Shown here piece after piece: positions 7,923 through 63,561 of a stretch of DNA of 64,000 nt; positions within the stretch are counted from its first letter, which is position 1; each line of letters begins with the position of its first letter. The translations under genes were made by a program, and so were the position numbers. The stretch lies in sequence record NC_061441.1; one strand, 5' to 3'. Under the pieces are notes generated by a model that saw only the letters and a list, made by a program, of their open reading frames with translations, did not search any database and was not told the origin of the DNA.

Positions 7923-9599
7923 TTACAGACTCAGACTTGTGGAGGTACTGCCTGACGGGTTGATGTTGAAGCGATAGATCAGACGCTTGGTAGTGCGCGT
8001 CGGGTCTAACACGATATCCAGAATCAAATCGCCGTTAGCGATAGTCTGGTTCGTGTTGTTGTTCTCATCACACACAACCACATAGCCTTGAGAGCCAGAG
8101 CTACCGCCACGAAGACCTCGAGCGAGTTTAATCTCCTCGAGGAACTTCTCAACAATACCCTTCAGGTAACCACGAAGGATGTTGTCGTTCGGGTCGAACA
8201 GGCCGACTTTACAGGTGCGATGGCACACCTCAAGCACGTAGCCAACCATACGCTGAATCTGAATCTGCTGGAAGGCAGAGTTCATGTTATACTGCGTACT
8301 CGCTTCCCAAACTGCGTAGCCACCACCAGAGATATCTGGCAGCTTACGGATGTAGTTGACCTGCTCACGGGTCATAGCATCACGGTCGTCCTGATCATAC
8401 TTCTGCGCGATAGCGAGGAAGTCGAGAGGGCTAGATGCAGTGATACCTGCAGGTGCGAACCACGTACCTCGGTTGTTGTCAGTGTACGCAAACACAGCAC
8501 AGATCTGACCGACACAGGCTGTCCACAGGTAGCGGCCAGTATCTTCATCGAAGATTTTAATGTCAGGCGTATACAGTGCCATGTTGGTGTCGTTCACGTT
8601 CAACGTCTGGCGACGATAGCGAATCGCTTTAGACACAGACTGCTCGGCAGAAGGGATGCCGCAGATAACGAAGCAGTTGATGTGAGCAGCAGCCGCAGCT
8701 TTCATACCACGGTGAATGATGTAGTCCTGAGTAGGACTAATCAGCAGCGTCACACGAACTTCTTCTGGATCACCGAAGTAGTCCTGATACGCTTGCGCCA
8801 GTTGGTCAGAACCAACAGTATCACCGTCTGAGCCACCTTGGAAGAAGATGAAGTCAGTGGTGAAGAAGTCGATATCAGTCGTGAAATATTCGTTACGGAT
8901 GAAACGGAAGTTTGAACTCTCGTTCTCCATAGCGTGATCAACACGATACTGACGGTCGAACTCATCGGCATAGTCAAACAGACTGCACTGATAAGAGTTT
9001 ACTGGCGCACTGCCGTTCTGGTAGTTCTCGAACTCGTCGATGTAGAACAGCTTCGTGTTGTACGATTTGCGGTCGTCGAACGGGTCGAGGCCACGTGGCG
9101 TAGCAGGACGAATCTGCAACGACATTGCGTTGTTCCAGTCACCTGGGTTTTCCAGAATGATGTAACCGATGATGTTTTCATTCAGCGGGTCATCAGGCAG
9201 GAAGCCTAGCTGGTCTGGAGAATCTACGCCAACGATATTACCTTCATCGTCAGTGTACGGAGTCAGGCGAAGTACAGGCTGTACAGCCGACGCGTCATCC
9301 ACAGTCAGAACACCAACAGCGTACTTCGCGTTTTTAGTCACACGAACGTATTTGAGCTGATTGGTCTGTTTGGCTACAGGCAACGCTAAATATAAGCCGA
9401 GGCCATACTTGGGATCTTTTGCACCGAAGATGTTTTTCAAATCATCTTTATTACGCACATCAACACGCTGATTAACAGGACCTCGACGGGCCTGACCAAC
9501 GATGCCTACGACGGACGTAGATAAAGACGTTGCACCAACGGAGAGATCCCGTACACCGGTGTAAACACCAGCAGAGGAATGCGTTGAGTTAACGGGCAT
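7923..9599 (-). CDS. contractile tail sheath protein
   Basis: 558 aa; N-terminal AGVY...S...GIVG...RGPV; C-terminal WFAPAG, GYVVVCDENNNT...I.NG.L..DI...P typical of sheath proteins. Confidence 0.92.
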   Translation of the reverse strand: MPVNSTHSSAGVYTGVRDLSVGATSLSTSVVGIVGQARRGPVNQRVDVRNKDDLKNIFGAKDPKYGLGLYLALPVAKQTNQLKYVRVTKNAKYAVGVLTVDDASAVQPVLRLTPYTDDEGNIVGVDSPDQLGFLPDDPLNENIIGYIILENPGDWNNAMSLQIRPATPRGLDPFDDRKSYNTKLFYIDEFENYQNGSAPVNSYQCSLFDYADEFDRQYRVDHAMENESSNFRFIRNEYFTTDIDFFTTDFIFFQGGSDGDTVGSDQLAQAYQDYFGDPEEVRVTLLISPTQDYIIHRGMKAAAAAHINCFVICGIPSAEQSVSKAIRYRRQTLNVNDTNMALYTPDIKIFDEDTGRYLWTACVGQICAVFAYTDNNRGTWFAPAGITASSPLDFLAIAQKYDQDDRDAMTREQVNYIRKLPDISGGGYAVWEASTQYNMNSAFQQIQIQRMVGYVLEVCHRTCKVGLFDPNDNILRGYLKGIVEKFLEEIKLARGLRGGSSGSQGYVVVCDENNNTNQTIANGDLILDIVLDPTRTTKRLIYRFNINPSGSTSTSLSL

Positions 9600-9625
9600 G
9601 TTTCGTCTCCTTATATGACTGTCTG

Positions 9626-9632
9626 AAATTAT
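9626..9632 (-). promoter_or_regulatory. class 2 motif ATAATTT upstream of the sheath gene
   Basis: 27 nt upstream of ATG 9599 in an intergenic region. Confidence 0.55.
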
Positions 9633-9683
9633 TGAATGGACGGCCTAGAACAAGGAGAAGGGTGCTATTTGGGTTAGAAATGC

Positions 9684-9710
9684 AAAAAGGGCAGCCGAAG
9701 CCACCCTTTT
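9684..9710 (-). terminator. intrinsic terminator
   Basis: GGGUGGC-UUCG-GCUGCCC plus U tract on the minus strand. Confidence 0.75.
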
Positions 9711-9712
9711 GA

Positions 9713-10795
9713 TTAGCAATCACAACCTACTGAGTCGAAATCCAGTTTCAGGCCAGGATAGAGTTGGTTAAACTCCTCCAGAGGCATATTGAAACCCGCA
9801 GCACTAACATGTCCATCACCACCGCGCGAACGTGCGATGAAACGAGCACTACCCGCATGACCTTCAGGATAACCTTTAGAACGGCAGCTAACGTAAACCT
9901 TTGTGGGGTCACGATGGCCCTTACGCACCAGCATCACTGTTTGGAAGTGAGCATAGTTGTCATAGACGTAAGTGCCTGTCTCGGATGCAATGCCCTTATC
10001 GCAAGGCACCACTGCATGTTTCACACCAATCAGATGATTGGGTTCCGAGAAGAAGCTGTTCGTTTCAATCAGACCGCGAATTACTTCGTTGCGTTCTTCG
10101 ATAGCGACAAAACCTTGTGCGATGATCTGTTCGATATCACCAGACAGGATAATCTTGTACGCAGCGCGAACGGTAGGAGGCATGTCAGTGTAGAAGCGAC
10201 CACACTTCTCAACTTCCTTGAATACGTCCTTAACGTAGCCTTCATAGAAAGCGAAAGCACGTTCATTGGTACGAATCCACAGGTCACGGTCAGACACCAG
10301 TTGCGCCATGCGAATGATGTTATCAGTGCAGGCATATTGGTGTTGCTGGAAGTCAGATACGTGCGCCATGTAGGCAAGCAGAGTACCACTACCACCAGCT
10401 TTGAACGTCAGGTCGAGAGGCGATACACCCAGCGCAGCACATTCTTTGGCATACAGCTCTGGTTCACGGCAATCATGGTGGTCAAGCACCTTGAAGTTAC
10501 CGCCAAAGCGTTTTGTCATGACTGCCATCTGGCGCTCAGTCAGAGAGAAGTCAACAACGACAACGCGCGTGTAGCCTGTTGGGTTTTTAATGAAATCGCC
10601 TTTATCGTCTTTGATACCTTCGAGACCCTTCATGTCTTCGAACTTAGTACCTTCGGCGTCAACGATATCTCCCTGGTCATTCGCGTAGACAGCAGGGAAG
10701 AAGTGGAGAGTATCGTTCGGGTACGCAAGTGCTGTAATGGCAGCGGCGAAACTACCATCAGCACATCCTTGATGATAGACAACAAGTGTAGTCAT
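9713..10795 (-). CDS. DHH/DHHA1 family phosphoesterase
   Basis: YHQGCADG, VVVVDFS, VLDHH and GDGHVSAAGF motifs. Confidence 0.85.
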   Translation of the reverse strand: MTTLVVYHQGCADGSFAAAITALAYPNDTLHFFPAVYANDQGDIVDAEGTKFEDMKGLEGIKDDKGDFIKNPTGYTRVVVVDFSLTERQMAVMTKRFGGNFKVLDHHDCREPELYAKECAALGVSPLDLTFKAGGSGTLLAYMAHVSDFQQHQYACTDNIIRMAQLVSDRDLWIRTNERAFAFYEGYVKDVFKEVEKCGRFYTDMPPTVRAAYKIILSGDIEQIIAQGFVAIEERNEVIRGLIETNSFFSEPNHLIGVKHAVVPCDKGIASETGTYVYDNYAHFQTVMLVRKGHRDPTKVYVSCRSKGYPEGHAGSARFIARSRGGDGHVSAAGFNMPLEEFNQLYPGLKLDFDSVGCDC

Positions 10796-12499: not shown

Positions 12500-12862
12500 T
12501 TAGGTATTTACAGATTCTGGCGAGCGCTGCCACACAACGAATTTGACGTTCAGAGCCAGCTCCTCCGTTTCAGCAGCAAGCCTAGGCTCGTACTTATGTG
12601 CGTAGCCACGCAAACACTCAGGCCGGACTGCAAGCTGCACATTAATCTTTTGGATTGGGTTCGGCACCTGACTATATGAATGGTCTTCAATGATAACAAG
12701 GTTATCAATACGGAGAACACCAGGAACTTCAAACACTGTGGGCAGTATGCCTGGTTTGAATGCTGAACCCATAACTGTCTCATGGTATTCAACAAGCGCT
12801 TTAACCAACAAGCGGCCGGCAGACTGACTCAGTGTAAGATTGTACTCGGTACGGAATTCCAT
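12500..12862 (-). CDS. hypothetical protein
   Basis: 120 aa ORF with GGAG RBS. Confidence 0.55.
   Translation of the reverse strand: MEFRTEYNLTLSQSAGRLLVKALVEYHETVMGSAFKPGILPTVFEVPGVLRIDNLVIIEDHSYSQVPNPIQKINVQLAVRPECLRGYAHKYEPRLAAETEELALNVKFVVWQRSPESVNT
12505..12513 (-). promoter_or_regulatory. class 1 motif CTGTAAATA
   Basis: 26 nt upstream of start 12479; exact consensus. Confidence 0.55.
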
Positions 12863-37405: not shown

Positions 37406-38479
37406 TTACATAGCAGTATACCCTATTTCAGATAACACCGCGTTAAGTTCCTTGCGAGCACTAACCCGCAAAGACTTTTTAATTCCAGAAGCCTTCAGGT
37501 ATTCCTTTAGGCCATCACGTGGGTCAATATCCGCAAGCGCCAGCTCGCTAACATCAACTGTATCTATATTATCGAGATCGACACGTTTATTCGTGGAATT
37601 TATTTGAGAAATATTTGGAACGCGAGTACGAATATCTGCTGGGATTGACACCGTATCTTTGACGACAACACGATATCGGATCGCAGGGTTTACCTCAAGG
37701 CGTGACCAATCCTTTTGGTTTTCAATCACAACTGTTTCGAGTCTAAAGCCCGGCTTACTATCGACAAACTTACGCTTAACCACCAGCTCTTTGTTCTTGT
37801 ACTGAGCACGAATATGAATGAATCCTTTCGGTAATGCTTCTCCAAATGTTTTCTGATACGGTGAGCCACAATATTCGAAGCGCTTCTTCTCCAGCACCTG
37901 AGCCAAGTGGATGTGCCCACTGATTGTGTAATCGCGTGGGTCTACTTTGATATCGTGTTTCGTCTTGAGTGGACGACCGTTATCGCCAAGAGCGCCAACA
38001 GCTTCAACGTGGCAGAAGTTAAGGCATGGCTTCTTGTGCTTGATACTTTCTCTTGCAGGGTGAGCCAAGAAGTTAACCACGATACCGTCAATTTCTACCT
38101 GCTCAGGGCGGAGATAGATGTGCAGCGACTTGAGGAAGTCCCATTCACAAAACGTTTTGATAAGGTCCACACTGGTGCTCGTCATATCTGCCCAGTCATG
38201 GTTGCCGCCACAGTACCACGTATCAATGATGCCGTCATACTTCAAGAAGAACTGGAGCAGCTTACGCTTCGTGTCATCGTCCATCTTGAACTTGTCAGTG
38301 ATATCACCAGGAACGAAGATGTGTTTGATGCCGTGCTCCAGTGCGTACTGATAGATACGGTCGATCGTTTCAAGCTGACGGTCAATGTGGTCAACAGGGA
38401 AGTGACTCGACAGACCTTCTAAGTGCCAGTCAGAAGTTACAAGCGCTTCAAGGAAAGCCGCTACTTTGTTCTTTTTCAT
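37406..38479 (-). CDS. sbcD: SbcD/Mre11-like metallophosphoesterase nuclease
   Basis: TSDWH, PGDI, GGNHD, FCH, SGHIH motifs. Confidence 0.9.
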   Translation of the reverse strand: MKKNKVAAFLEALVTSDWHLEGLSSHFPVDHIDRQLETIDRIYQYALEHGIKHIFVPGDITDKFKMDDDTKRKLLQFFLKYDGIIDTWYCGGNHDWADMTSTSVDLIKTFCEWDFLKSLHIYLRPEQVEIDGIVVNFLAHPARESIKHKKPCLNFCHVEAVGALGDNGRPLKTKHDIKVDPRDYTISGHIHLAQVLEKKRFEYCGSPYQKTFGEALPKGFIHIRAQYKNKELVVKRKFVDSKPGFRLETVVIENQKDWSRLEVNPAIRYRVVVKDTVSIPADIRTRVPNISQINSTNKRVDLDNIDTVDVSELALADIDPRDGLKEYLKASGIKKSLRVSARKELNAVLSEIGYTAM

Positions 38480-45775: not shown

Positions 45776-46345
45776 TTAAATTCCAACCTGTTTAGTGATT
45801 GTGATAACACGCTGGTACCAACCATAAATGTTATCTTCCTGGGTTTCATCTGCCTTAGCGATGTTCTTCAACTTCGCAATACGACAGCCGTTGTAGGCAT
45901 AAGCCAATACTTTGATATCGCGTACCTTGACATAGGCGTCAAGTGCGGCCAGTGTCTTAGGTCCGATATTTGCAGCAGGAGCAAAGTCTGGGTAGAGTTT
46001 GCCGCGCTGGTTCAGGATATTCAACTGGTCTTGCAGTTCAGCAATCGCAGCTGGTGGTCCTGAGTTAACTGCATAGTCAAATACCCACAGCGCCAGTTCT
46101 TGGCTGTACTTAGCAAGCTGATCGCATTTGCAGAAGTCCCAGAAATTAGCGCTGTAGATAGCGTATGCGATTTCGTACGGCAGATTTTGCATATCGCCTT
46201 TATAGCCATATGCACGAGCATTCTTCTCCGTGACACCCCAACGTGTAGGGCCACCACGATCCGCCGCGCGATTTGTATACTTCTCACCACCTTCTCGGTC
46301 GATGACCTCGGCAATGGCTTTCTTACGAAACGTCATAGCGTCCAT
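45776..46345 (-). CDS. glycoside hydrolase family 108 endolysin with C-terminal PG-binding region
   Basis: EGG..YTN...DRGGPTRWGVT; FDYAVNSG; IGPKTLAAL. Confidence 0.9.
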   Translation of the reverse strand: MDAMTFRKKAIAEVIDREGGEKYTNRAADRGGPTRWGVTEKNARAYGYKGDMQNLPYEIAYAIYSANFWDFCKCDQLAKYSQELALWVFDYAVNSGPPAAIAELQDQLNILNQRGKLYPDFAPAANIGPKTLAALDAYVKVRDIKVLAYAYNGCRIAKLKNIAKADETQEDNIYGWYQRVITITKQVGI

Positions 46346-53382: not shown

Positions 53383-54666
53383 TTACTTCTTCTTCTTTTT
53401 CTTTTCTTTCTTCGGCTTGTCGTCTTCGTCGTCTTCGCCCATCTTGACTGCCAGCTTACCTTCATAGATATCAGCCATGAGAGTAAGCACTTTGGACTCC
53501 AACATAATGTCTGCTGGTACGGACGTTGAGTTGAAAGCTACTTCGGCATCAGCCAGTGCGGATTGCAGATAGACCATGCTAACCAGATTGACTTTGATGT
53601 TGTCTTTCTTGGTCATGTTCATGAACATCTTGAGGCCAGCCGACTGCCACTTATTAGTTTCGGCATAATGACCTAACACGCCGTGAATAATCCAACGAGC
53701 TTTCGCAACGATTGCACGTGGGTTGTTCGCTTCACGCAGGAACTGAATAACACCAATCAGGTCCATCGCCAGATACGCACCAATCATCTGGACAGCTTTC
53801 GCTTCCATATCGATCTCTGGATCTGCTGCTGCGAGTTCGGCAACGAGGTTCTTATCGAAGTCCTCACCACCTTTCACGGACGCATAGATATTCTGCAACA
53901 TGGTGATTGCGCCACGCATCTGACCACCAGCATACTCTGCAACCTGATGCAGTGCTGCTTCTGCTTTATCACGCGCCTTATCTTTCTTCGGCATGATATC
54001 AAGCTGGTCACTGATCTCCAACAGACGCTTATGAATCACGTCAGTAGGAATCGGCCTGATAGGCAATTGCGTCATGCGACTGATCATCGTGTTCTTCATC
54101 TTCTCTGGGTTCGTTGTTACGAAGATGAATACAACGTGCGCTGGTGGCTGCTCGGTGATCTTAAGGAACTTCGATTCGGCCGCGCTTGACATGAGGTGCG
54201 ATTCGTCGAAGATGAATACGCGACGTTTGAACATCGGACTCAGCGGTGCGCTGTCTACGATCTTCTGGCTGCCTTCAACTTTACCAGCATCGCCACCCAT
54301 ATCGAACTCTTGCTCATCAGGGTGTGCGCCACGGTCGTGCATCTCACACGAACGACATTTGCCGCAGGCCGAGAACGTGTCGCAGTTGATATACTTCGCT
54401 ACCAGACGCGCAAACGTTGTTTTACCTGAACCCAAATGACCAGTAATGATCATTGTCGATGGAATCGTTTTCGACTTCTGCCAACCCTTCATGATCTTAA
54501 CGATGTGGTCTTGACCAACATAGTCTTCAATCTTCTTTGGTCGGAATTGGTCTGCAAAGTTAATCGTTGTCAGTTCAACTGACTCGGAAGAATCGCCTTT
54601 CTTTTTCTTTGGAGTATCACCACCAAAGGAACGCGACTTCTTCTTTTTCTTTTCTTCTTTAGCCAT
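53383..54666 (-). CDS. dnaX: DNA polymerase III gamma/tau-like clamp loader subunit
   Basis: FRPKKIEDYVGQDHI, GHLGSGKTT, CGKCRSC Zn module, FIFDESH, ISRMT (SRC-like), GGQMRGA. Confidence 0.9.
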   Translation of the reverse strand: MAKEEKKKKKSRSFGGDTPKKKKGDSSESVELTTINFADQFRPKKIEDYVGQDHIVKIMKGWQKSKTIPSTMIITGHLGSGKTTFARLVAKYINCDTFSACGKCRSCEMHDRGAHPDEQEFDMGGDAGKVEGSQKIVDSAPLSPMFKRRVFIFDESHLMSSAAESKFLKITEQPPAHVVFIFVTTNPEKMKNTMISRMTQLPIRPIPTDVIHKRLLEISDQLDIMPKKDKARDKAEAALHQVAEYAGGQMRGAITMLQNIYASVKGGEDFDKNLVAELAAADPEIDMEAKAVQMIGAYLAMDLIGVIQFLREANNPRAIVAKARWIIHGVLGHYAETNKWQSAGLKMFMNMTKKDNIKVNLVSMVYLQSALADAEVAFNSTSVPADIMLESKVLTLMADIYEGKLAVKMGEDDEDDKPKKEKKKKKK

Positions 54667-54703
54667 TTTCAATTCGCCCTTAGTTCTAATGCGTTACACC
54701 AGT

Positions 54704-54807: not shown

Positions 54808-55005
54808 TTAGGCAAAGCTCATCTCCCAACGCGGTACAACGCGGAAGAATTGCTTAAAGTGGGACGGTGGGTTCTGCTTGATGGACTCAAGTTTCTTTTC
54901 CACAACGTCATAATCTTTTATGCCACTCTCAACGCAGTGAGTGGTGAATGTACCGTCAGCCTCAATCAAATCGGCGACAACACGGTAGCTTGGTTTTCTC
55001 AGCAT
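54808..55005 (-). CDS. small hypothetical protein
   Basis: 65 aa; AGGAG RBS; class 1 variant upstream. Confidence 0.55.
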   Translation of the reverse strand: MLRKPSYRVVADLIEADGTFTTHCVESGIKDYDVVEKKLESIKQNPPSHFKQFFRVVPRWEMSFA

Positions 55006-55044
55006 CTAGTCTCCTGAAAACGAAATTCTCATTGCTCTGAATTA

Positions 55045-55053
55045 TGTTTACAG
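55045..55053 (-). promoter_or_regulatory. class 1 variant CTGTAAACA
   Basis: 40 nt upstream of 55005. Confidence 0.45.
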
Positions 55054-55069
55054 ATTACTGGAGTAGTCA

Positions 55070-55435
55070 CAAAAGAATAAAGTAAGACAAATCTTAAACT
55101 CCAATAGGGACTCGCTGGAATTCCTATTGGAGTTCACCCTCAACCGATGACGGTCGGCGGAAGGTGTTCTCCCCGTGCTTTTCGATTGCACCAGCACGGT
55201 AGCGCTTGCGGTCTTACGCTCTTGTCATGCAGCGGGCCGGCAGGGATGGTAGCATTTCCCGCCGCAAAGAGCAGCCGCTTTCGGCCATTAGCGATAACGC
55301 GGTGTTACGCTTAACGGCCCGACTCTGTGGCCGAGTCTGTACAAAAAAGAGTTCGGCCTATTCCCCAATTCGGCAAAAAGAAATAAGCCGAACTAAACAG
55401 TCAACGCACACTCCATATGCGCTGTTTTGTACTGT
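55070..55435 (-). ncRNA. candidate structured non-coding RNA (~370 nt), family unknown
   Basis: no credible ORF; at least 7 consecutive helices whose imperfect pairs are mostly G-U on the minus strand; GNRA-type segments; class 2 motif immediately upstream; ends in a 12 bp perfect stem plus U-rich tail. Confidence 0.6.
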
Positions 55436-55438
55436 AAC

Positions 55439-55445
55439 AAATTAG
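55439..55445 (-). promoter_or_regulatory. class 2 motif CTAATTT upstream of the candidate ncRNA
   Basis: exact motif, with no protein gene downstream for over 400 nt. Confidence 0.5.
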
Positions 55446-55472
55446 AAACATCCTGCAATATTCAGACAATTC

Positions 55473-56060
55473 TTAGTTCAACATCGGAACAAGATTTTGC
55501 AAGAAATGTTTGCGGTCAAACGAACTGATTCGGTGCGGATGATCGACGTGCATGTTCCATCCTTTGTTGAACAGCAGCACGTTCTTCGGCAGGACAACGT
55601 TAAGGCCAACGCGAGTGAACGAATCACGAACGGCAGTCACTGGATTGTCGTCAACCAGAATCCAAGTACCTTCACCGTACTTCTCGTTCAGGTAAGCAAT
55701 CTTATCAGGATGCTGGCGTGAGTCCAGGCAGTCGATGTGGTCAAACAATGACAGGTGCTTCTCCAACACCTTGCGTGTGTAGCGTTCACCTTTGGCGTGA
55801 TAGCCACGATGCGTACAAATGCCAACACTGAAACCGTCGCGCACCAGCATTGCAACCGTTTGGATGAAGTAGTCACGCATGTTAGCTTCGAGCATGAAGC
55901 GACCGTCAGCCAGCATTTCCACGAAAGGTTCGTGACCATTCTCTGGCGTAATGTACGTGTCGGTACCTGGGTAGATCCCAAAGTTCATCAGATAGCACAG
56001 CATGAAGTTATGCGTATCGAATGCCGTGTCGTCCATGTCGAAGAAAATATATTTAATCAT
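55473..56060 (-). CDS. HAD-superfamily phosphatase / 5'-nucleotidase-like
   Basis: YIFFDMDDT (DxD motif I), ICTHR (motif II), K, ILVDD (motif IV). Confidence 0.8.
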   Translation of the reverse strand: MIKYIFFDMDDTAFDTHNFMLCYLMNFGIYPGTDTYITPENGHEPFVEMLADGRFMLEANMRDYFIQTVAMLVRDGFSVGICTHRGYHAKGERYTRKVLEKHLSLFDHIDCLDSRQHPDKIAYLNEKYGEGTWILVDDNPVTAVRDSFTRVGLNVVLPKNVLLFNKGWNMHVDHPHRISSFDRKHFLQNLVPMLN

Positions 56061-56398
56061 TAATGCCTCGTGCTGTTGCACAGAAAAGGTGTATCGTTGA
56101 TGAAGCCTAGATTCAACTGACAGGCAAGGTGAGTCAGTCGCATCTCATCGGCGTTGGTTACGATCATAACGTTAGCGTATGGGTCGAGTCGGAAGTTTGG
56201 AACTTCGATCAACTCAACGTTGAATGGACCAGACTCGTTCTCATTAATGAAGTACGCGCCAAGCATCCACGTTGTACCGTTATCATCTGGAAGTAGGTGA
56301 CCGATGATGCAATCCTCGTCCTGCATAACAATATGCAGTGGTCTATCGAAGTCCATATCTTCTGCACCAAATTCAAAATGGAAATCATCATCGCTCAT
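56060..56398 (-). CDS. hypothetical acidic protein
   Basis: 112 aa; TAATG coupling. Confidence 0.5.
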   Translation of the reverse strand: MSDDDFHFEFGAEDMDFDRPLHIVMQDEDCIIGHLLPDDNGTTWMLGAYFINENESGPFNVELIEVPNFRLDPYANVMIVTNADEMRLTHLACQLNLGFINDTPFLCNSTRH

Positions 56399-61424: not shown

Positions 61425-61455
61425 TTGGACCTCAAAACATGCGTTTCGTGGGTGA

Positions 61456-61464
61456 TCTTTACAG
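61456..61464 (-). promoter_or_regulatory. class 1 variant CTGTAAAGA
   Basis: 32 nt upstream of ATG 61424. Confidence 0.45.
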
Positions 61465-61755
61465 AATCCGTCTTTTTCTCGTGGTATGGAACTCAAATTG
61501 CATCATCAGATTAGGTAGATAGGAGATATCAGCATGTTCATGCAGCATGAGCGCACTATAGTCACAAGAAATCAGCAGTCTGAAACCAGAACCCTGCTCC
61601 CAGGAAGCATATCCCTTTGAAATAACCATGCCGAAACAGGCGAAAACGTACAACCTTGAATAGACTGGTTATTTGGTGTCAATGCAGAGGATTCTTAATC
61701 CCAGCATGTGGACGTGCAAAGGGAGTGCTCCCGGGATGAATCTACAGGAAAGTGG

Positions 61756-63554: not shown

Positions 63555-63561
63555 AAATTAG
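63555..63561 (-). promoter_or_regulatory. class 2 motif CTAATTT
   Basis: 24 nt upstream of 63531. Confidence 0.55.

Follow-up and report, generated by a model that had tools for sequence, protein, structure and literature searches.

The 64,000-nucleotide stretch of record NC_061441.1 analysed here (the window; its base 1 is record base 124003) is DNA of Erwinia phage pEa_SNUABM_18 / pEa_SNUABM_16 (Alexandravirus, ~266 kb), with 100% identity over the 901 bases around the locus in question. All annotated genes of the window lie on the minus strand, and the largest unannotated stretch within 1-61700 is a gap of 467 nt at 55006-55472, the runners-up measuring 331, 171 and 141 nt. An earlier note, made from the letters alone, had picked out this gap, bounded by 55005 and 55473, as the largest, and had proposed that it encodes an undescribed structured non-coding RNA (ncRNA) on the minus strand. 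The coordinates and the sequence agree, the rank in size holding within the annotated part of the window, 1-61700, and the proposal itself stands: with strong covariation, strand-specific G-U pairing, no Rfam match and no annotation in any of 46 phage records, the gap very probably encodes a real minus-strand structured RNA of a new family, where new refers to the RNA family and not to a mechanism. The locus is laid out as follows:

55473..56081, minus strand: upstream neighbour, a HAD-phosphatase-like gene of 202 aa with a DxDxT motif
55078..55438, minus strand: the RNA, ~350 nt, its putative 5' end placed by the promoter motif and its putative 3' end by hairpin P13 and the U-rich tail
54808..55005, minus strand: downstream neighbour, a 65-aa open reading frame (ORF) with its own ribosome-binding site
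53383-54672, minus strand: clamp-loader gene, after the 65-aa ORF

Fold, strand and covariation

The minus strand of 55070-55445 folds with a minimum free energy (MFE) of -153.5 kcal/mol (z -7.17), a value that none of 100 shuffles equals, and the plus strand of the same region with -128.2 (z -3.80). The structure of a control gap of comparable length at 61425-61755 is not unusual (z -1.7), and the folds of two relatives, from phages Yoloswag and JA11, have z of -8.1 and -4.1. To follow the pairing through the family we aligned 24 of the 46 phage records found by blastn (alignment A1). RNAalifold, applied to related phages as the earlier note had suggested, predicts 94 pairs in A1, of which 25 keep pairing with changes on both sides. 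Our hand-refined structure has 95 pairs in 14 helices, and over the 24 sequences 90.2% of its cells are standard pairs, as against 30-45% in full-length controls in which the 3' partners were slid by 1-3 columns. Double changes occur in 33 pairs (135 cells) of this structure and in 3-12 pairs (8-38 cells) of the slid controls. The 3' core, aligned separately for 17 sequences (A4; 39 pairs including a pseudoknot), is 95.0% paired, with 15 pairs showing double changes, and its slid controls are 31-49% paired. None of 500 shuffles of the core reaches any of five measures, but the kinship of the sequences inflates such shuffle statistics, a point that weighs against our reading and makes the slid controls and the independent lineages the better evidence. 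Covariation is uninformative for helices P1 and P4 and for the lower seven base pairs of P13, which are invariant in the alignment. Plain MAFFT misregisters the pseudoknot strands of distant lineages, and we therefore used helix searches in each sequence and an alignment guided by a covariance model (CM). The fold is kept by compensatory changes across at least six related phage lineages.

The strand follows from the kind of mismatch that is tolerated. Across the 95 pairs and 24 sequences there are 188 G-U/U-G cells and 23 A-C/C-A cells, which bears out the earlier note, where G-U was said to predominate among the imperfect pairs of the minus strand. This asymmetry places the pairing constraint on the minus-strand transcript, and not on the DNA or the other strand. 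From 5' to 3', the elements of the RNA are:

55339..55432, minus strand: 5' domain, a three-way junction of P1, P2 and P3
55425-32/55339-46, minus strand: P1, invariant within A1
55418-24/55402-08, minus strand: P2, 3 pairs with double changes and an invariant GGAG in its loop (55411-14)
55380-94/55350-64, minus strand: P3, a 15-bp hairpin, 6 pairs with double changes
55321..55337, minus strand: P4, a small hairpin GACUC/GAGUC, invariant in sequence
55283..55319, minus strand: P5/P6 hairpin, with one C-G to U-A change in P6 of phage Y3
55208..55278, minus strand: P7-P8-P9 domain
55275-78/55208-11, minus strand: P7, which closes the P8/P9 domain and was missed by the earlier note
55267-71/55219-23, minus strand: P8, 4 pairs with double changes
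55258-65/55229-36, minus strand: P9, 5 pairs with double changes
55173..55205, minus strand: H-type pseudoknot, stem S1 55202-05/55188-91 (also missed before), stem S2 55193-99/55173-79, with an A-rich loop 3
55169-72, minus strand: GGAG, 3' of the pseudoknot
55160-66/55135-41, minus strand: P11, enclosing P12, likewise missed before
55154-58/55143-47, minus strand: P12 hairpin, its loop within the invariant GACCGUCAUC (55146-55)
55097..55134, minus strand: P13, a 12-bp terminal hairpin whose upper part covaries
55078..55096, minus strand: U-rich tail 3' of P13, with 16 invariant positions in A1

The three-way junction of the 5' domain is found in all lineages except the JA11 type, which has a single hairpin instead. 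P1 is kept, with changed pairs, in Yoloswag and pEa_SNUABM_5 (seen by eye and unscored), and the low paired percentage of P4 reflects a local misalignment of the window row. The 11-nt loop of P5/P6, UAACACCGCGU (55297-55307), is invariant in the three closest lineages. Within the P7-P9 domain, where P7 is longer in the SNUABM_34 group through matching insertions on both strands, the loop GCUACC (55248-53) and the junction GUAAGAC (55211-17) are conserved, and TAAGAC is invariant across all lineages.

The pseudoknot has its strands in the order S1-5', S2-5', S1-3', S2-3', and each stem has support: across the 17-sequence core either one is 100% paired, with double changes in 2 pairs of S1 and 5 of S2. 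In each of the 14 sequences tested (8 sequence types) the two stems recur in the same topology with different letters. Stem 1 is found as GCGCU/GGUGC, ACGUU/GACGU, AGCGC/GCGCU, GGGCGCG/CGCGCCU, GGUGCG/CGCACU and AAGUGCCU/AGGCACUU, and stem 2 as CCGUGCU/AGCACGG, CUGCACU/AGUGCAG, CCGCACG/UGUGCGG, CCCGCU/CUGCGGG and UCACGCU/UGCGUGG, while loop 1 measures 1-6 nt, loop 2 0-2 nt and loop 3 4-9 nt.

On the 3' side, a hairpin with the loop letters of P12 stands at another position in the Yoloswag and pEa_SNUABM_5 RNAs, and this relocation suggests that the P12-type loop hairpin could be a movable recognition module. No lineage departs from ACUCCAA/UUGGAGU in the lower 7 bp of P13. The tail that follows may act as a weak terminator tract or have a function as a single strand. 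GGAG occurs three times in the RNA, against a single CUCC, all at conserved places. The copy that follows the pseudoknot has a possible partner in the CUCC of P13, and their pairing would extend P11 and compete with the base of P13; it is possible in all lineages, and in contig L208 the altered GGAG letters still permit G-U pairing with CUCC. The pattern hints that the GGAG/CUCC pairing and P13 may be mutually exclusive helices. A helix closing the 5' and 3' ends of the RNA, present in the MFE structure of JA11, is absent from L208 and was rejected.

Two 11-nt elements of the RNA strand, CGUAAGACCGC and CGUAACACCGC (window 55206-55218 and 55297-55309), differ by one base. Both are highly conserved, the first placed in a junction or a loop and the second in the other of these contexts, and the two may form a pair of recognition sites. 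The loop UAACACCGCGU has a single exact 11-nt complement, at 37433-37443 on the minus strand, ~25 nt before the stop codon of an SbcD-like gene; ~0.03 such matches are expected by chance, and as a target in trans we judged it a chance match.

The eight helices quoted in the earlier note can be read against this structure. Seven of them are present where it had placed them and are kept in relatives. The second survives in part, since the outer half AAACAG/CUGUUU is unsupported and the relatives back CAGCGCA/UGCGUUG instead. CCGUGCU/AGCACGG (55173-55199) is likewise present and kept in relatives, but it is stem 2 of the pseudoknot and not a simple hairpin. The GNRA-type segments that it had listed do occur, but are located in junctions rather than in tetraloops.

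Family membership and distribution

The gathering thresholds of Rfam 15 (4227 covariance models) give no match in the whole window, a scan that the earlier note had also had in mind, and a permissive scan of 54900-55600 returns only four matches, of 15-17 bits against thresholds of 56-80 bits. According to ARAGORN the window has no tRNA or tmRNA gene, the Rfam models of tmRNA and RNase P RNA give no match at E <= 10, and the Rfam ribozyme families at E up to 10 yield only a chance-level RAGATH-13 (15.5 bits against an 80-bit threshold). We thus agree with the earlier note that hallmarks of tRNA, tmRNA, RNase P and group I introns are lacking, ARAGORN and Rfam being empty and the flanking genes separate. 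A group I or II intron was rejected: a stop codon closes the ORF upstream, the one downstream begins with a ribosome-binding site and start codon of its own, and no Rfam intron model matches. We also rejected a type III antitoxin RNA of the ToxI kind, as the gap has no tandem or iterated repeats and its neighbours are a HAD hydrolase and the 65-aa ORF. In the literature we found no description of this RNA, the comparison covering material other than the unnamed candidates of the 2023 catalogue of viral structured RNAs (PMC10690425).

By blastn the RNA region is present in 46 phage records, and none of the 46 annotates it. Identity is 80-100% within Alexandravirus, ~71% in Sasquatchvirus (Y3, SNUABM_52) and ~69% in an unclassified group around SNUABM_34 (SNUABM_34, 13, 7, 45, 46, 21, 14 and 25). 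The clamp-loader protein, together with an aligned set of HAD-like proteins (A2), led us to more distant phages, and in Yoloswagvirus, Rivsvirus, Salmondvirus and four metagenomic contigs RNA homologues lie directly after the HAD-like gene:

L178, about 1153-1594: Yoloswag homologue
L179, about 1133-1561: pEa_SNUABM_5 homologue
L181, about 2082-2304: homologue of Dickeya phage JA11 (Salmondvirus type)
L184, L206, L208 and L226: further homologues, in a 72-kb metagenomic contig, a sister Salmondvirus and contigs of 256 kb and 110 kb, respectively

Searched with a covariance model of the 122-nt core (R1), every member locus has exactly one copy on the sense strand, at 23-142 bits. The window scores 138 bits, and the Sasquatchvirus, SNUABM_34-group, Rivsvirus, Yoloswagvirus, Salmondvirus and metagenomic members score 23-113 bits; the model finds no second copy in the window, and its antisense matches are solely to the palindromic P13. 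The universal part is a 3' core made of the TAAGAC junction, the pseudoknot, P11/P12 and P13 with the invariant ACUCCAA/UUGGAGU, around which the 5' and middle modules grow or shrink by lineage to give total lengths of 220-440 nt: the JA11 type has ~220 nt, and Yoloswag and pEa_SNUABM_5, with extra middle hairpins, ~430-440 nt. We propose to define the family by the succession of TAAGAC junction, H-type pseudoknot, P11/P12 and ACUCCAA/UUGGAGU terminal hairpin, placed after a HAD-like gene, all of which the window contains.

A pattern scan recovers 21 viral stretches, 20 of which are in family genomes or well scored by nhmmer. The matches listed by a loose motif scan of viral contigs were chance ones; another such scan gave 23 extra stretches, and all were rejected as chance by nhmmer. 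In 185,579 genomes of bacteria and archaea the motif scan gave 15 stretches, all chance, and blastn against E. coli genomes and plasmids shows no similarity. R1 finds no copy in Alcaligenes phage Afa-NA1, nor any match in 41-kb regions around the clamp loader of phages PaBG and Lu11. The carriers are phages of 255-268 kb, which belong to one phage group infecting Erwinia and Dickeya.

In all RNA-carrying lineages the HAD-like gene immediately precedes the RNA, and the gene next downstream varies by lineage, encoding 65, 107 or 119 aa or being the clamp loader directly. The 202-aa protein is regarded as HAD-type phosphatase-like because of its PHROG matches (phrog_16292 at 9.5e-25; phrog_415, 'polynucleotide kinase', at 1.1e-13) and its DxDxT motif. 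Its longest ORF starts from GTG at 56081, and the GenBank start is 56060, where the upstream gene also ends. The surroundings of the locus are replication genes (clamp loader, SbcC/D, DNA polymerase, helicase).

Two further observations concern other unannotated gaps. The gap at 61425-61755 (331 nt) is present in only 12 phage records and may hold a small ORF or an extended start of a 583-aa gene. In Pseudomonas phage PaBG two unannotated gaps of ~1.5 kb lie near a tRNA cluster (L233:3750-5226 and 8397-9891), with no match to R1.

Promoter-like motifs and the extent of the transcript

Three short elements bracket the RNA:

55464..55469, minus strand: TTGTCT element upstream of CTAATTT, invariant in the Alexandravirus and Sasquatchvirus copies
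55439..55445, minus strand: CTAATTT promoter-like motif, the presumed promoter of the RNA, with a putative start a few nucleotides downstream
55047..55054, minus strand: TCTGTAAA, promoter-like motif of the 65-aa gene at -48, the downstream boundary of the RNA unit and outside the RNA

CTAATTT occurs 12 times on the minus strand of the window and never on the plus strand. The other intergenic copies are at 63561, 53319, 47320, 40466, 37362, 36487, 32870 and 13603, and copies inside genes are at 46149, 17029 and 1252. All eight of the other intergenic copies are upstream of genes, seven of them 36-77 nt before the annotated start, and the copy at 55439-55445 is the sole one with no ORF in the ~80 nt after it; the structured region comes next. 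CTAATT precedes the RNA in every lineage, and in JA11 it overlaps the stop codon of the HAD gene. The narrower motif query TCTAATTT misses this recurrence of CTAATTT. A TTGTC element is found 8-9 nt upstream of several other CTAATTT copies, the spacing at the RNA locus being 19 nt. A sigma-70 reading of the upstream block was rejected, since TTGTCT-17-TCTAAT is not recurrent and the recurring unit is CTAATTT.

The earlier note had given the RNA a late-type promoter of its own. The promoter part of this claim is supported indirectly, in that the motif has a 12:0 strand bias, lies upstream of starts and precedes the RNA in every lineage, so that CTAATTT may well be the RNA's own promoter. The late timing is plausible because one CTAATTT copy heads an operon with the head-tail connector; the tail-sheath gene has neither CTAATTT nor TCTGTAAA.

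The second motif, TCTGTAAA, is mostly followed by TA; all of its 8 copies are on the minus strand (first bases at 12514, 21789, 31160, 38518, 41023, 54713, 55054 and 61465), and 7 of them are 31-48 nt before a start codon. Among the genes behind these are two for DNA polymerase and those of the clamp loader, SbcD and an HNH endonuclease; the genes matched to families are replication genes. The GenBank record of phage Lu11 labels the same letters 'putative middle/late promoter', also ahead of its clamp-loader gene. For PaBG, a related phage, phage-encoded sigma factors have been reported in its group (PMC7412058).

In the JA11 type as in the three closest lineages, the gene after the RNA is equipped with a TCTGTAAA motif of its own. 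Between the RNA and the clamp-loader gene, JA11 and L208 also have a canonical terminator (a GC-rich hairpin and a U-run) ahead of this motif. A U-run after P13 is found in some lineages only. We favour a separate transcription unit because of the recurring CTAATTT, the TCTGTAAA of the next gene and the terminator of JA11 and L208, and on these motifs we consider it probable that the RNA is free-standing.

Function, rival explanations and known systems

The explanation that we prefer, and which we regard as narrowly probable when taken as a whole, is that of a new structured ncRNA gene on the minus strand, which would be transcribed from just downstream of the CTAATTT at 55439-55445 into an RNA of ~350 nt ending at or shortly after P13 (55097-55134), and this RNA would be free-standing and not the leader of an mRNA. 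Its invariant loops and junctions would serve either for recognition by proteins (one or several, of the phage or the host) or for tertiary contacts within a compact fold, the candidates being the GGAG loop, UAACACCGCGU, GCUACC, GUAAGAC, the CCGUCA loop and the ACUCCAA/UUGGAGU duplex. The RNA would act in trans during infection, as a ribonucleoprotein (RNP) or as a regulatory RNA. We infer from their invariance that the unpaired elements and the ACUCCAA/UUGGAGU duplex are conserved for recognition and not for pairing alone. A protein-binding or trans-acting regulatory RNA is favoured because of these invariant elements, the two 11-nt elements and the three GGAG against a single CUCC, and a role as protein-binding scaffold or regulator is put forward tentatively. 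An RNA machine of a new class (a ribozyme, or an RNP or RNA-only assembly core for virion morphogenesis, DNA packaging, or the capture of the host's RNA polymerase or ribosomes) seems unlikely; if true, it would share its promoter class with the structural-gene operon and would be the first such large RNA in jumbo phages other than the phiKZ type.

Several observations weigh against the explanation that we prefer. P13 in the window has no canonical U-tract and was not reported as a terminator-like site, so that transcription may run on into the 65-aa gene. Between the RNA and the next ORF of Yoloswag and pEa_SNUABM_5 neither a terminator nor TCTGTAAA is seen, and in these two phages the RNA may form a long leader. 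By R1 no RNA adjoins the more distant HAD homologues (L185-187, L209). We infer the ends, abundance and timing of the RNA from its sequence, and its constant neighbour is a generic HAD hydrolase.

The rival explanations follow, the likeliest first. One is that the RNA is a cis-acting leader of the 65-aa gene and the clamp-loader module, either an attenuator that senses a ligand or protein or a processive antitermination element. In its favour, the position upstream of a replication module is constant in all lineages, the combination of conserved junctions, a pseudoknot and variable peripheral stems is typical of aptamers, and the post-pseudoknot GGAG could compete for the CUCC at the base of P13, with the G-U option kept in L208; a canonical terminator after P13 is also not seen in the window, Yoloswag and pEa_SNUABM_5. 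On the other side, a promoter-like motif stands at the usual distance ahead of the next gene in the JA11 type as in the three closest lineages, and the JA11 type has a canonical terminator between RNA and gene. The U-run after P13 is confined to some lineages, 220-440 nt is large for a leader, and the gene immediately downstream differs by lineage, which leaves the leader doubtful. RNA-based anti-defence is known in other phages, and we hold it improbable that the RNA is a decoy of this kind, which would act in trans by imitating a host RNA or by binding up a host factor, for instance a nuclease, RNA polymerase, the ribosome or an RNA-binding protein. The three GGAG and one CUCC at conserved places, the invariant loops and the confinement of the family to one phage group on Erwinia and Dickeya would fit a decoy, but the searches showed no similarity to host RNA (no blastn match in E. 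coli genomes and plasmids; all 15 bacterial pattern matches chance) and there are no tandem repeats of the type III antitoxin kind. A decoy moreover overlaps the free-standing ncRNA that we prefer and does not exclude it.

A shade less probable still is an RNA for the initiation of replication, a persistent hybrid or primer at an origin within the replication cluster, comparable to the origin transcripts of plasmids or phages. The locus does sit among replication genes, and the equivalent gap upstream of the clamp loader in Afa-NA1 (L180:2007-2488, 482 nt) has about seven iteron-like direct repeats of ~15 nt, with no RNA homologue, and may be a replication origin. In the window, though, the cumulative GC skew does not turn at the gap, which has no iterons, tandem repeats or AT-rich unwinding tract, and a primer role leaves unexplained why RNA pairing is constrained across the whole 350 nt, pseudoknot included. 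A catalytic RNA of an undescribed class, self-cleaving or other, ranks just behind it. Complex folds, pseudoknots and invariant junction nucleotides are enriched among ribozymes, and the RNA has a large complex fold, a pseudoknot and many invariant unpaired junction nucleotides; against this stand the lack of any Rfam ribozyme match beyond the chance-level RAGATH-13 and of an intron context, the flanks being separate complete genes. Least credible, to the point of being very improbable, is that the gap is a DNA-level element (cruciform, origin or packaging signal) or holds hidden small protein genes. There are many inverted repeats in the gap, and small hypothetical ORFs are annotated within the homologues of Yoloswag (gp204, L178:1303-1467) and pEa_SNUABM_5 (gene 00214, L179:1306-1431). 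But DNA hairpins do not give the strand-specific G-U to A-C asymmetry (188 to 23), and the plus-strand fold is much weaker. No frame stays open across the homologues, whose indels are not multiples of three, and we rejected a protein-coding gap on the broken frames; the two annotated ORFs are on opposite strands and are probably mis-annotations.

Large ncRNAs with complex folds are rare, and those that are understood are ribozymes, riboswitches or the cores of RNP machines. The RNA described here has ~95 bp and a covarying pseudoknot in six lineages of 255-268-kb phages, yet it is missing from the databases and annotations queried, and it offers a testable way into RNA-based functions of jumbo phages other than the phiKZ type. 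Some of the phages that carry it figure as candidates for the biocontrol of fire blight in two papers (PMC9686651, PMC12690260), and on that footing a conserved unannotated gene in such phages is worth knowing.

Among known systems, tmRNA and RNase P RNA resemble it in their ~350 nt and in having at least one pseudoknot, but differ in that ARAGORN and Rfam are negative here and there is no conserved tag reading frame. The nut/put RNAs of lambdoid phages and the leader pseudoknot of T4 gene 32 share with it the position beside a phage promoter-like motif, the replication cluster or the H-type pseudoknot. The RNA here is, however, several times larger, the next gene has its own promoter-like motif and JA11 a terminator, and, unlike in T4, the gene downstream is not that of a single-strand-binding protein. 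GOLLD and ROOL are alike in being large multi-domain RNAs of phages or prophages, supported by covariation and forming a unit of their own; they differ in that their Rfam models do not match, and the RNA here is smaller (220-440 nt), belongs to one group of Erwinia/Dickeya jumbo phages and has no adjoining tRNA genes. The pRNA of phi29 belongs to an unrelated phage type, and its model is presumably among the Rfam families that were scanned without a match; by eye we saw no complementary loop pair for ring formation in our RNA. It resembles our RNA in being a phage-encoded structured RNA with a three-way junction and conserved loops, and the fact that CTAATTT also heads the structural-gene operon would fit a role in virion assembly.

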